Shown piece after piece: positions 20,653 to 26,265 of a DNA stretch of 64,000 nucleotides. The notes below the pieces were generated by a model. It was not told where the DNA came from. It made no database searches and worked only from the letters and a program-made list of their open reading frames with translations. Source of the DNA: Oopsacas minuta (taxonomy: Eukaryota > Animalia > Porifera); the NCBI GenBank assembly GCA_024704765.1, contig JAKMXF010000066.1:1051883-1115882 (forward strand), written 5' to 3'. The translations under genes were made by a program, and so were the position numbers. Positions within the stretch are counted from its first letter, which is position 1, and the number at the start of each line of letters is the position of its first letter.

Positions 20653-20701
20653 CGTCCGTGGACCGCCAGGGGTTCAAGGACCCTAGGTTGGGAACTACTT
20701 G
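20653..20701. mobile_element. Possible terminal remnant of a hAT/Charlie-like non-autonomous element
   Basis: GC-rich GTCCGTGGACCGCCAGGGGTTCAAGGACCCTAGGTTGGGAACTACT resembles hAT-MITE right ends. No matching left end found. Confidence 0.3.
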
Positions 20702-20819
20702 TTAATGGGATAATATTTGTTGTCATGTTAATTAATTCACAATTCATGATCCAATGTTTATCCAATCTGTTATCTAGATTAGAATTACAAATCAATCACA
20801 TTCACTTGCCAAAATATAA

Positions 20820-23800
20820 ATGAATAATAGGTCAGAAATGATCGATGAAGAACTAGGCTGTATTAAAAAATTCGATTCATGGAATGAACATGAACAAATC
20901 GAGTTTGTGAAAGAGCTGATCTCAAGGATGGCATTTCATCAACAAGAAAAGGTCAACAGTTTTCTAGAACCAATCCTACAACGAGATTTCATATCAGAAT
21001 TAGCTAATCGTGGTCTGGACAACATCGCTTGTTATATTCTCAGCTCACTGGTCAGTTTATTATATATTTTACCCATAAATGTTAACCAATTCGTTATTTT
21101 AAGATTCCATATTTTACCATTTACATCCAAATTGAGATAATCCATCATTCATTTACCGAATATTTTGTAATAATAGCATTGATATATATGTATGCGCACT
21201 CTGCTGTCAAATTTCGTCCCGTTTATAGATGGATTAAGAGTGTTAGAAGGTTGTCAGAACATTTATATCGCACACATAACTGTGGCGAATTAAGATATAA
21301 GCATATTGGACAGACTGTAAAGGTAGCTGGATGGTTACAAAAACCAAGAATAATTACAAATAGTGATGTCATACCGTTGTTTATCCCAATACAAGACATG
21401 TATGGTGTAACACAAGCAGTAACGAAAGAGCCTACTCTGAAGAAAATTGTTAAACAGACTCCTATAGATTCCATAGTTTCGATTGAGGGAATTGTGATAG
21501 AGAGAATAAGTCCAAATCCTAATCTCCGAACTGGACAGATAGAAATAGTTGTAAATAAAATAGAAATATTAAATCAATGTGAAAATTTGCACTATACGAC
21601 AAAGTCCCATTCTAAAAACGTTAGTCATTGTCTAGCCAATCATACTCGTTATTTATATCTGAGAAGACAACAAAACATCGAAGTTCTAAAGAAGCGCAGC
21701 GAATTCATACATTTTCTCTCCAACTATCTTCACATTAAGCATAACTTTATTGAAATTGAGACACCTATTTTATCCAAAAAGTCACCAGAAGGCGCAAAGG
21801 AATTTATTGTACCATCTTCAAACCTGAAAAGGCAATTCTATACCCTCTCACAAAGTCCACAGCAGTATAAACAACTACTGATGGTCTCATCTATTGATAA
21901 ATACTTCCAGATTGCCAAATGTTTCCGTGACGAGATACACACAGCTCAAAGACAGATCGAGTTCTCACAACTTGACTTAGAAATGGCATTTGTGACCCAA
22001 GATGACGTCATAAATCTTATAGAAGAAATGGTTTGTCAAGCTATTGAGAACATTTGCCCAAAATCAGCCCTGTTAGAGAGACCCTTTCCTAGATTGACTT
22101 ATCAAGCAGCTATGAAACAGTATAATACTGATAAACCCGATTTGCGATCCGCAGGTACGAAAGATAAGTTGGCTTTCGCCTGGATTCAGGATTTCCCGCT
22201 TTTCACAAAGACGACACAAGGTGTTATAATGTCAACACACCATCCGTTTACAACACATCATATAGACGATGCTGATCTAATATACAGTGACCCATTGAGA
22301 GCACGTGGACAGAGTTATGACTTAGTTTTGAATGGTGTTGAAGTGGGTGGTGGTTCTATCCGTGTACACCAGGCTGCTCTACAGAAACACATCATAGAGA
22401 ATATTCTGAAAGAAGATTCGTCTCACTTACAGCATCTCATAACTGCTTTAGGACATGGTTGCCCCCCTCATGGTGGATTCGCATTAGGCCTAGACAGAAT
22501 TCTAATGATTCTACTGGGAAGATTGAATGCGAATGATGTTATAGCTTTTCCAAAGTCATCAGCTGGGAGGGATAATACTGTAGGATCTCCAGGGAACTTA
22601 TCACAAGCGGAGTTATCAGAATATGAACTCTGTTTTAAATCATAGAATTTGTATTTAGGAAATCGTTATATGCAATCAATCACTTTTTGATTACAGTATT
22701 CTCAAATTTAACTGCTATTATATGTTAGCGCTGGATTGATGCATCATATATAAGGTTATATATATATATATGTTATGTATTTTTAGGACGAGCGTTCTCT
22801 GTGCCGGGCAGAGCTGGTGTGTCGAACTTGGTATGACGTAATAATGAAAGCGAAACTTTGGCGGAAGCTAATCATGCATAATATCAGAACACAACCTTTA
22901 TGGAGAGGATTGGCTGAGCGGAGGAAATGGGGTCAGTTTCTTATAGGGCGTGGTTCAGGCGAAATTGCTCCTATAGGAGGAAGACTTCAATTATCTGGGA
23001 GATATTACAGACTCCTATACCCGTGTATTATCCAGGTATGTACATTTTTCAGCTAATAATAAATGCAGAATTTATTTTTCCTATTTGTAAAGGATATCAA
23101 AGTTTTGGAGAAAAATTGGCAAACTGGAATACCAAGGATGAATATTATTCAATGTAATAGCTCTAATAGTAAAGGAGTTTATTGTCTACAGTACGATGAT
23201 AGGAAGATTGTATCTGGCTTGAGAGATAATACTATTAAAATATGGGAGCGTGATACCCTTAATTGTGTACAGGTAAATATTCTAATTTTATCTGTGTAAA
23301 ATAGGCTGTAATGTTAAAATTATTTATAATTAGATTCTAAAAGGGCATACAGGAAGTGTATTATGTCTACAGTACGATGAGAATGTAATTATAAGTGGGA
23401 GTTCCGACTCTACAATTCGTGTATGGGATGTCCACACAGGTGTGATGATAAAGACTCTTATTCATCACTGCGAAGCCGTCTTACACTTAAGATTTGATGG
23501 AGTTAACATGGTAACTTGTTCGAAGGACCGAACTATAGCAGTTTGGGTTGTAAACTCTTCCAATGATATTGTACTACGTCGTGTATTAGTTGGTCATAGA
23601 GCTGCAGTCAATGTTGTTGATTTTGATGACAAATTTATCGTGAGCGCAAGTGGTGACCGTACGATTAAAGTATGGCGTACTTCTACTTGCGAGTTTATTC
23701 GTACACTTCAGGGCCATCGTAGAGGTATAGCCTGTTTGCAGTATAGAGATAATCTAGTTGTGAGTGGATCTAGTGATAATTCAATACGGTTATGGGATAT

Positions 23801-24188
23801 CCATACTGGACAATGTTTGAGGATATTGGAGGGGCATGAAGAATTGGTCAGATGCATACGATTTGATGATAAGAGGATTGTTTCAGGTGCCTACGATGGG
23901 AAAATTAAAGTTTGGGATCTAGAAGCTGCTATGAACCCGAGAGTACCTACCGCTACACTATGCATACGCACTTTAGACGAGCACACTGGGCGGGTCTTTC
24001 GTCTACAATTCGATTCATTTCAGATAATTTCAAGCTCACACGATGATACAATTCTAATCTGGGATTTCTTAGACCAGCGTTCACCTGATCACGAATTGAC
24101 ACGACAAGAAGAACAAGAAGTTTCTAGTAACAACCAAATGTCAAGCTTTGATTATTATCAAGAATTTTTATACTCTGATAATACATAA
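20820..24188 (+). CDS. BTRC: beta-TrCP (F-box/WD40; BTRC/FBXW11 ortholog), 4 exons; intron 1 hosts DARS2
   Basis: Exons 20820-21050, 22787-23035, 23093-23272, 23334-24188, all phase 0. D-domain ([17 protein letters not shown]), F-box split as YILSSL|[15 protein letters not shown], seven WD40 repeats ([31 protein letters not shown]). Confidence 0.95.
21188..22645 (+). CDS. DARS2: Mitochondrial (bacterial-type) aspartyl-tRNA synthetase, intronless, nested on the same strand in beta-TrCP intron 1
   Basis: [41 protein letters not shown], motif 2 [26 protein letters not shown], motif 3 [12 protein letters not shown]. First ATG at 21188. Confidence 0.93.
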   Translation: MYAHSAVKFRPVYRWIKSVRRLSEHLYRTHNCGELRYKHIGQTVKVAGWLQKPRIITNSDVIPLFIPIQDMYGVTQAVTKEPTLKKIVKQTPIDSIVSIEGIVIERISPNPNLRTGQIEIVVNKIEILNQCENLHYTTKSHSKNVSHCLANHTRYLYLRRQQNIEVLKKRSEFIHFLSNYLHIKHNFIEIETPILSKKSPEGAKEFIVPSSNLKRQFYTLSQSPQQYKQLLMVSSIDKYFQIAKCFRDEIHTAQRQIEFSQLDLEMAFVTQDDVINLIEEMVCQAIENICPKSALLERPFPRLTYQAAMKQYNTDKPDLRSAGTKDKLAFAWIQDFPLFTKTTQGVIMSTHHPFTTHHIDDADLIYSDPLRARGQSYDLVLNGVEVGGGSIRVHQAALQKHIIENILKEDSSHLQHLITALGHGCPPHGGFALGLDRILMILLGRLNANDVIAFPKSSAGRDNTVGSPGNLSQAELSEYELCFKS

Positions 24189-25185: not shown

Positions 25186-25357
25186 CAGTAGTCTCGTAAT
25201 ACGAACAGGGTTTGGTGTAACTCGAGATAAGGTGTACATTTGTACACTTTATCAGCTCCTTTCAATGCTTTTCAATGTAAATTAGTTTGGATAATACGTA
25301 ATACGATAAGAAGTACGAATTTGACACTCCCGGCGTACGTATTAACGAGACTTTTTA
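25186..25357. mobile_element. Degenerate pogo/Tigger-like MITE, family D
   Basis: TA-CAGTAGTCTCGTAATACG ... CGTATTAACGAGACT imperfect TIRs. Related to 63337-63452. Confidence 0.55.
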
Positions 25358-26265
25358 CATTACATAAAATACTCACCAATTTTGTCCTATTTTGGTCTTC
25401 CAATCTTCATAAAATATCAAAGTGTCTTTAAATCTCAAAACAGAAATATCAACATCTCAAAATATAGCTTATCAAAGTTCCTTCACGGATTGTTTGTTAA
25501 AAATTGGAACATTTATGTAACAATCTTCCCCAAACAATCAGCTCGTTAAAATTGCAAAATAATTTCTTACTACAGAATATCATTACAAACTAGCAGACTA
25601 CTCCTATTATATAGTACGTAGGAGCACCTGGCGACAGTGCAATAGGTGTGTATATGTAATAACCTGTTACTCCACATGCATTGGCTGTCTAAAGTATTTT
25701 TGCAATGTTTATTGATCTAATTGAATCAGTCCGTAAATTTCATATGGTGCTAACATTGTCTATCCTACGGTCCAAATGAACTTACCCTCATCAATTATCC
25801 CAGAAGTTCTCTAACTAGTTCCAGTTGCAAATTATGAATTCAATGCATTTTTTAGCTTCAATTAGCTTATTCGCTAACTTACAAAATGTTGCACACAGCT
25901 CATTTATGAAATGATTGCCAATTACATCACTTCCAGATTTTCTCAGTAAATCATTGTAGCTATATTTAGAACAAATTTTCACACTATATTTGTTTACATA
26001 GCTTTACACCTTACAAGGTAATCAATTCATTAACTACACATTTATCCATTGTTATGTGTTATGTCTACGGAATATGATATGCATTTCATTCAATTGTATA
26101 TCCATTTATGAAACCATAGCTATAACAATACGGCCTCTCTATATGCAATTCTACAATAGCCAAATGCATCAGTATTTATAGACGAAGACTTCTTGAATTG
26201 TCAATAGTTTTTTCAACTCTTACAATTCTATTTTTTTTAGAAAAGCTAATAAGCTTTTTCTGGTA

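Follow-up and report, generated by a model that had tools for sequence, protein, structure and literature searches.

Nested genes, which lie wholly within an intron of a host gene, make up 12.4% of the genes of the glass sponge A. vastus, and many of these nests are conserved with Oopsacas minuta (Francis et al. 2023, PMC10282587). In mouse and human, nests in which the two genes share an orientation and nests in which they are opposed are nearly equally common (PMC11694760). As to the processing of transcripts, spliced-leader trans-splicing is reported in hexactinellids (Douris et al. 2010, as cited in PMC7986045), the leader of A. vastus being ~37 nt long (PMC10282587); operons or polycistronic precursors were unreported for hexactinellids as of 2021 (PMC7986045), and a literature search found no paper reporting operons in sponges. 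Here, I show that a stretch of 64,000 nt of the O. minuta genome (assembly GCA_024704765.1, contig JAKMXF010000066.1, positions 1,051,883 to 1,115,882 of the forward strand; hereafter the window, whose first nucleotide is position 1) holds a complete gene for a mitochondrial-type aspartyl-tRNA synthetase (AspRS) inside the first intron of the gene for beta-TrCP, on the same strand. Nested genes and leader trans-splicing being already described in glass sponges, the kind of arrangement is known, and it is the pairing of mitochondrial AspRS (mt-AspRS) with beta-TrCP that is new. An earlier interpretation of this DNA, made from its letters (the sequence-only reading), had regarded nested animal genes as mostly antisense, which is too strong, the bias towards opposite orientation being only slight in mouse and human (PMC11694760), and had likewise overstated the rarity of the arrangement, nested genes amounting to ~12% having been reported in glass sponges (PMC10282587).

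The host and its nested gene are laid out as follows:

20820 to 21050, plus strand: beta-TrCP exon 1, 77 residues, with the D (dimerisation) domain and the first half of the F-box.
21051 to 22786, plus strand: beta-TrCP intron 1, 1736 nt, phase 0, GTCAGT...TTTTTAG, enclosing the entire AspRS gene.
21188 to 22645, plus strand: AspRS coding sequence, intronless, mitochondrial-type, 485 residues and a stop codon.
22787 to 23035, plus strand: beta-TrCP exon 2, 83 residues, with the second half of the F-box and a linker.
23093 to 23272, plus strand: beta-TrCP exon 3, 60 residues, the first WD40 blade (WD40 match).
23334 to 24188, plus strand: beta-TrCP exon 4, 284 residues and a stop codon, the remainder of the WD40 propeller.

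The host is a complete gene of four exons, separated by introns of 1736, 57 and 61 nt, in which D domain, F-box and WD40 propeller (PF12125, PF12937 and PF00400) follow one another in this order. Exon 1 matches the Pfam family Beta-TrCP_D (PF12125, 1.3e-17) and aligns with residues 134-199 of human beta-TrCP1, its final residue corresponding to residue 200; its last codon, CTG, ends at 21050 and is followed by the donor GTCAGT (21051-56). Exon 2, beginning at 22787 after TTTTTAG, matches the F-box-like family PF12937 over profile positions 17-45 and corresponds to human residues 201-277. The phase 0 join between human residues 200 and 201 restores the split F-box, as had been claimed. The 60 residues of exon 3 are an exact fit for the gap left between exons 2 and 4 (human 278-337), and exon 4 covers human residues 338-592 (E 1.7e-146).

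Wholly between the first two of these exons, and on their strand, the AspRS open reading frame (ORF) runs from ATG at 21188 to a TAG ending at 22645. Its 1458 nt fill 84% of intron 1, the upstream and downstream remainders being 137 and 141 nt; the nest, its filling and its flanks thus stand as the sequence-only reading had placed them, down to the coordinates. Intron 1 is ~30 times as long as beta-TrCP introns 2 and 3 because a whole AspRS gene sits in it. The inner gene had been called an intact, intronless DARS2, and the assignment holds, both in its match to the class II D/K/N core (PF00152, 7.8e-97) and in its position within the eukaryotic mt-AspRS clade, supported at 100/100. The same ORF is 100% identical to part of an O. 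minuta protein record at NCBI, KAI6659315.1.

An assembly misjoin, the obvious artefactual origin of such a locus, is excluded. Three DNA sequencing runs of the source sample cover the locus evenly, with contigs that tile every junction and show zero differences, and the layout recurs in seven other assemblies. A search for traces of retroposition or transposition found no direct repeats flanking the nested gene, and no Rfam family was detected across the entire 64-kb window.

The comparison set consisted of O. minuta and seven hexactinellid-type assemblies (L001, L002, L003, L004, L009, L010 and L011), the latter being long sponge-holobiont metagenome or genome assemblies from ENA and Logan. 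Comparison with related genomes had been proposed as a check, and in 8/8 assemblies exon 1, AspRS and exon 2 follow one another on one strand, exon 1 ending and exon 2 starting at identical residues (tblastn); WD40 exons come next on that strand. The surroundings are shared as well, with a Meis/PKNOX homeobox gene upstream and a UQ_con gene downstream in all of them. Intron 1 measures 1674-1790 nt in the relatives, except in L002, the most divergent of them, where it reaches 2616 nt. The AspRS of the seven relatives is intact, 480-485 residues long and 60-76% identical to that of O. minuta, and neither gene carries a stop or a frameshift in any of the eight assemblies. Against the same seven, the last 64-75 residues of exon 1 are 77-98% identical, with synonymous sites near saturation, and exon 2 is 82-98% identical. 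Third codon positions of the host exons, by comparison, are only ~58-60% identical between species (~0.58-0.60), so the lineages must be deeply diverged and the nest older than their split. As read from these alignments, both genes have kept their integrity under purifying selection and, judged from the genomes compared, the nest is a genuine and ancient same-strand pair of host and nested gene of glass sponges.

How two mRNAs might be made from such a locus is suggested by the spacers on either side of the nested gene, which could be aligned for O. minuta and six of the assemblies (the seven alignable species), those of L002 being unalignable. Mean column identity in the spacers is 53-61%, and only a few blocks are invariant, namely the host donor, AATAGC, CAAT[ACT]AA and the host acceptor. 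Donor (GT[ACT]AG) and acceptor (TAG/GA, the slash here and below marking the splice point) do not vary among the seven aligned species, and L002 reads the same at both. The other two blocks comprise the following elements in O. minuta:

21172 to 21177, plus strand: AATAG/C acceptor-like site, its AG at 21175-76, 11 nt upstream of the AspRS start codon; candidate trans-splice site.
22674 to 22679, plus strand: AATCAA hexamer resembling a poly(A) signal, 29 nt past the AspRS stop.

AATAGC is the sole invariant block of the upstream spacer beyond the host donor. It follows a T-rich stretch, like the cis acceptors of the host gene, and its distance to the AspRS ATG is variable, ranging from 7 to 26 nt. 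Downstream, the AATCAA of O. minuta falls within CAAT[ACT]AA, where the six remaining alignable species read AATAAA or ATTAAA, the signal lying ~30-40 nt after the AspRS stop; in L002 an AATAAA is found at ~+73 from that stop. Across the window, a YAG occurs no more than 20 nt upstream of the start codon in 12/16 cases, against 43% expected at random (p = 0.01), while an acceptor score based on the pyrimidine tract before start codons does not reach significance (9/16 vs 34%, p = 0.056).

On balance, given these conserved motifs, it seems probable that the AspRS gene is a nested gene provided with a leader acceptor and a poly(A) signal of its own, the host mRNA being formed by ordinary cis-splicing. 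The spliced leader of hexactinellids would most likely be trans-spliced at AATAG/C (21177), 11 nt before the AspRS ATG, and the conserved AAUAAA-type signal ~30 nt past the AspRS stop would direct cleavage within the host intron. Beta-TrCP mRNA would come from transcripts in which both signals are ignored and the whole 1736 nt are removed by cis-splicing. AspRS transcription may begin from the host promoter, or from a separate start site located within the 125-nt spacer or ahead of it. The receipt of a leader at this acceptor, the cleavage directed by the hexamer and the transcription start are inferred from the layout of the motifs. Trans-splicing combined with intronic polyadenylation had been put forward by the sequence-only reading, and with the invariant AATAGC and the conserved hexamer it finds support at the level of sequence.

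Several observations weigh against this proposal. In L002 the nearest AG lies 39 nt upstream of the AspRS ATG, with none within 38 nt, and its flanks of 554 and 616 nt leave room for an independent promoter. The hexamer of O. minuta, AATCAA, departs from the canonical AATAAA, and AATAGC might serve as something other than an acceptor, e.g. as an initiator. Moreover, a 53-nt intron ending in an AAG acceptor, such as the deposited protein record uses to join host exon 1 to AspRS (see below), would be normal for this genome, in which an AAG acceptor is used by beta-TrCP intron 2, and may yet be spliced in O. minuta itself.

The most direct competitor is an independent nested gene, transcribed without a leader from a promoter of its own in the spacer or in exon 1, with AATAGC as an initiator, promoter or translational element; host and nested gene would then interact by transcriptional interference only, as at mammalian H13/Mcts2. 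In mammals, nested genes that share the orientation of the host and have promoters of their own are indeed common (PMC11694760, PMC13309782), and the 554 nt upstream of AspRS in L002, with no AG near the ATG, would suit them well. Against it stand the position of AATAG/C behind a T-rich tract, in the manner of the host's cis acceptors, and at a variable distance from the ATG, and the enrichment of YAG before start codons across the window. Nor does exon 1 show the extra constraint at synonymous sites expected of a promoter lying within it: no sign of one was seen there, the identity at synonymous sites being 0.58 as compared with 0.60 in exon 2. An AspRS gene relying on a promoter of its own and lacking a leader is therefore regarded as unlikely.

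The proposal of a leader acceptor and a poly(A) signal can be taken one step further, in that the beta-TrCP pre-mRNA might be the obligatory precursor of both mRNAs, in what would amount to an "operon inside an intron". Each precursor would then face a choice: either the leader is added at 21177 and cleavage follows after 22679, yielding AspRS mRNA while host exon 1 is discarded, or the 1736 nt are spliced out, yielding beta-TrCP mRNA. This stronger version is possible, although I would sooner doubt it than accept it. If true, the output of a ubiquitin-ligase adaptor would be coupled to that of an enzyme of mitochondrial translation, the two being mutually exclusive, and it would be leader trans-splicing that enables glass sponges to have such unusually large numbers of same-strand nests and tightly packed genes.

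Donor and conserved acceptor lie in one transcript and on one strand, and AspRS might instead be an alternative terminal exon, the donor at 21050/51 being cis-spliced either to the conserved AG or to exon 2; AspRS would be translated as the latter of two cistrons, behind a short D-domain ORF, or be fused to it in some species. The join of exon 1 to the conserved AG has different outcomes among the seven aligned species: four meet a stop immediately, one shifts frame, and two (L010 and L003) stay open and in frame. The four species in which TGA stands right past exon 1 have the AspRS ATG 1-20 nt further on, as would suit a second cistron, and the two open frames would suit a fusion. However, a join that ends in a stop, a frameshift or a fusion according to the species has no conserved protein product, and the frame relation between exon 1 and acceptor, being unconserved, fits an acceptor that receives a leader instead of exon 1. 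Besides, an essential enzyme of 485 residues placed behind an ORF of 78-135 codons with several AUGs would be translated inefficiently, and a fusion would bury the mitochondrial presequence.

One sequencing run, X5, touches on the same question. It derives from a relative ~96% identical, and its depth is 3-9; its contigs cover 20698-22465, with none on exons 2-4, gaps that in themselves prove nothing. A search for runs labelled RNA-Seq listed none. One of them (20897-21190) crosses donor, acceptor and ATG unspliced. Should X5 be RNA, contigs that span exon 1 and AspRS but leave exons 2-4 bare would favour a precursor or isoform with exon 1 and AspRS, and would speak for an alternative terminal exon, against which the unspliced state of that same contig must be set. 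The terminal-exon explanation is held to be quite improbable.

The deposited record KAI6659315.1 (584 residues; 20838-22645) embodies a fusion of this sort, in which beta-TrCP exon 1 is linked to AspRS through 28 residues translated from spacer sequence. It depends on one further feature:

21051 to 21103, plus strand: 53-nt intron of KAI6659315.1, with acceptor AAG at 21101-03 and an open frame into the AspRS ATG.

This second acceptor was overlooked by the sequence-only reading, which had held that a splice from exon 1 into the AG at 21175-76 gives CAT-TGA and that no fusion protein results. The former is correct; the latter holds for that acceptor only and fails for the AAG at 21101-03, by which a 53-nt intron leads to an open, in-frame fusion. 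An open in-frame path in O. minuta is offered by an intron of either 53 or 86 nt.

That the deposited model is correct, and the gene yields a 584-residue protein of D domain and AspRS by way of the 53-nt intron, may be argued from the record itself, whose sequence has precisely such a splice, and from the annotation having drawn on RNA-seq hints (PMC10280926), in addition to the ordinary intron length and acceptor noted above. But 5/7 of the other assemblies (L004, L001, L009, L011 and L002) have no open in-frame acceptor, and L010 and L003 have a fusion path only via AATAG/C; the linker of 28 residues derives from spacer that is not conserved, and the model strips beta-TrCP of its D domain and half of its F-box. 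AUGUSTUS, moreover, predicts no nested genes by default. The O. minuta annotation was made with BRAKER/AUGUSTUS (PMC10280926), and versions of AUGUSTUS without a nested-gene option report almost none (83 for O. minuta, as compared with 2432 for A. vastus; PMC10282587); a gene that is nested in A. vastus has been noted to figure in the O. minuta annotation as the first exon of a different gene (PMC10282587). The fusion is very unlikely to be real, and KAI6659315.1 is, on these comparisons, probably an annotation artefact.

A protein search with the D-domain region of KAI6659315.1 returned that record as the sole match, and one with exon 4 returned beta-TrCPs of other animals and no entry from a hexactinellid or from O. 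minuta; nor was the exact 485-residue AspRS ORF on record in the protein search. Those members of the sponge AspRS cluster that were traced to contigs belong to genomic or metagenomic assemblies. KAI6659315.1 is most likely a chimera in need of correction, by which beta-TrCP, a core component of Wnt and NF-kB signalling, is left mis-modelled in a species whose genome paper discusses missing signalling genes.

A different means of handling the nested gene, the looping out of AspRS by long-range RNA pairing through an inverted repeat (21170-85 / 22706-21), was considered and rejected: duplexes formed by the acceptor region with the spacer after AspRS are energetically no better than shuffled controls in 7/7 species (z -0.8 to +0.9).

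The enzyme encoded by the nested gene is itself peculiar. Besides the class II core already mentioned, Pfam recognises an OB-fold anticodon-binding domain (PF01336, 8.5e-08), the closest match among solved structures is to human mitochondrial AspRS (4ah6, 1.5e-110), and the catalytic motifs QSPQQ, FRDE, HHPFT, GGGSIR and GLDR are all present in the alignment. Two features set it apart from bacterial homologues or from the human enzyme:

21188 to 21265, plus strand: N-terminal extension, ~26 residues before YRTHNCGEL, basic and with almost no acidic residues.
22147/22148, plus strand: point of loss of the insertion domain, DKPDLR (residue 320) / LAFAW.

A basic N-terminal extension of 21-26 residues is found in all eight sponge proteins, where bacterial homologues begin at the RTH motif; from its composition, it is presumed to be a mitochondrial presequence. 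The insertion domain (~130-155 residues) is absent from all eight, which measure 480-485 residues. Human residues 298-437, the bacterial insertion or GAD-like domain that sits between motifs 2 and 3, have no counterpart in the sponge enzyme, and the alignment shows a gap of 157 columns against oyster, fungal and long bacterial AspRS. The human enzyme, by comparison, is described as keeping the bacterial architecture (PMC3575848), and a limited search of the literature turned up no mt-AspRS described as lacking this domain.

The boundaries of the gap, DKPDLR / LAFAW, are identical to those of the short AspRS of Patescibacteria, from which the gene might have been acquired horizontally before landing in the intron. 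The best full-length matches outside sponges are indeed of ~465 residues and come from Portnoybacteria, Sungbacteria and similar lineages, at 43-46% identity, and the gene is intronless. Single-exon genes, though, are the majority in hexactinellids anyway (PMC10282587), and the phylogeny speaks against a transfer: in a maximum likelihood tree the eight sponge proteins form, with 10 eukaryotic mt-AspRS, a clade supported at 100/100, and a tree constrained to join them to the short forms of bacteria is worse by 134.6 log-likelihood units (p-AU 3.4e-10). Bacterial transfer is accordingly rejected by the tree and the approximately unbiased (AU) test, and a Patescibacterial origin has next to no probability left. 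Going by tree and alignment, the sponge AspRS is by descent an orthologue of DARS2, in which the insertion domain was lost secondarily and by convergence. A mitochondrial AspRS can, it appears, dispense with the bacterial insertion domain, a stretch that Patescibacteria lost independently.

The 5' end of the host gene deserves some attention of its own. Exon 1 counts 77 residues in O. minuta as against 133-137 in the other seven assemblies, where the extra N-terminal stretch is acidic and Ser/Pro-rich; O. minuta has lost ~56-60 N-terminal residues, the frame being closed directly upstream of 20820. Upstream of the beta-TrCP ATG, at 20793-20808, lies a motif, CAATC[AC]C[AG]TTCACTTG, that is kept in 7/8 assemblies, L002 retaining just ATTCACTT of it, and two acceptor-like AGs (20776-77 and 20781-82) precede it. 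The region 20770-20808 may comprise a trans-splice site of the host itself together with a conserved element of the 5' untranslated region or the promoter.

Downstream of both genes, at 25213-25400, the three DNA runs of the source sample show a word depth ~3 times as high as in adjacent sequence, and X5 one of ~150, and many contigs of 31-35 nt are stacked at 25268-25300; the rise in depth and the pile-up of contigs indicate a short repeated element at 25213-25400.

To sum up, the locus is distinguished by its tight flanks of ~140 nt on each side, by the protein domain that is split around the nested gene, by conservation in eight assemblies and by two conserved processing signals. It offers a compact test locus for the expression of a same-strand nested gene and its host, and could show whether leader trans-splicing underlies the abundance of nesting in glass sponges.

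The described system closest to the enzyme is human DARS2 (4ah6; PMC3575848). Both are of the bacterial type of class IIb, with OB fold, catalytic core, C-terminal extension and presequence, the last presumed in the sponge, and both fall in the same eukaryotic clade, whereas the sponge enzyme is without the insertion domain (human ~298-437) and its gene without introns.

As regards the arrangement, mammalian nests such as H13/Mcts2 (PMC13309782; survey in PMC11694760) likewise consist of an intronless gene in a 5' intron of a host on the same strand, the nested poly(A) site being a potential premature end of host transcripts. In contrast, mammalian nested genes have their own promoters, often CpG islands, in long introns, while the flanks of the O. 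minuta nest, only 137 and 141 nt, leave little regulatory room, and an acceptor precedes the ATG.

The trans-splicing and operons of nematodes and tunicates resemble the locus in other respects, i.e. an unpaired 3' acceptor a few nt before the ATG, a poly(A) signal after the gene, and a gene lying close downstream of another coding sequence on the same strand. They differ in that AspRS sits inside an intron of its host, where leader addition and polyadenylation would compete with cis-splicing.

The nested genes of A. vastus (PMC10282587) are alike in being single-exon genes that lie wholly in a host intron and are conserved between hexactinellids, and there too the automatic annotation of O. 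minuta merges the inner gene with exons of the host. The paper describing them makes no mention of the mt-AspRS/beta-TrCP pair and is silent on strand and on the processing of nested genes, whereas here one such nest has been followed through eight assemblies and conserved processing signals have been identified within it.

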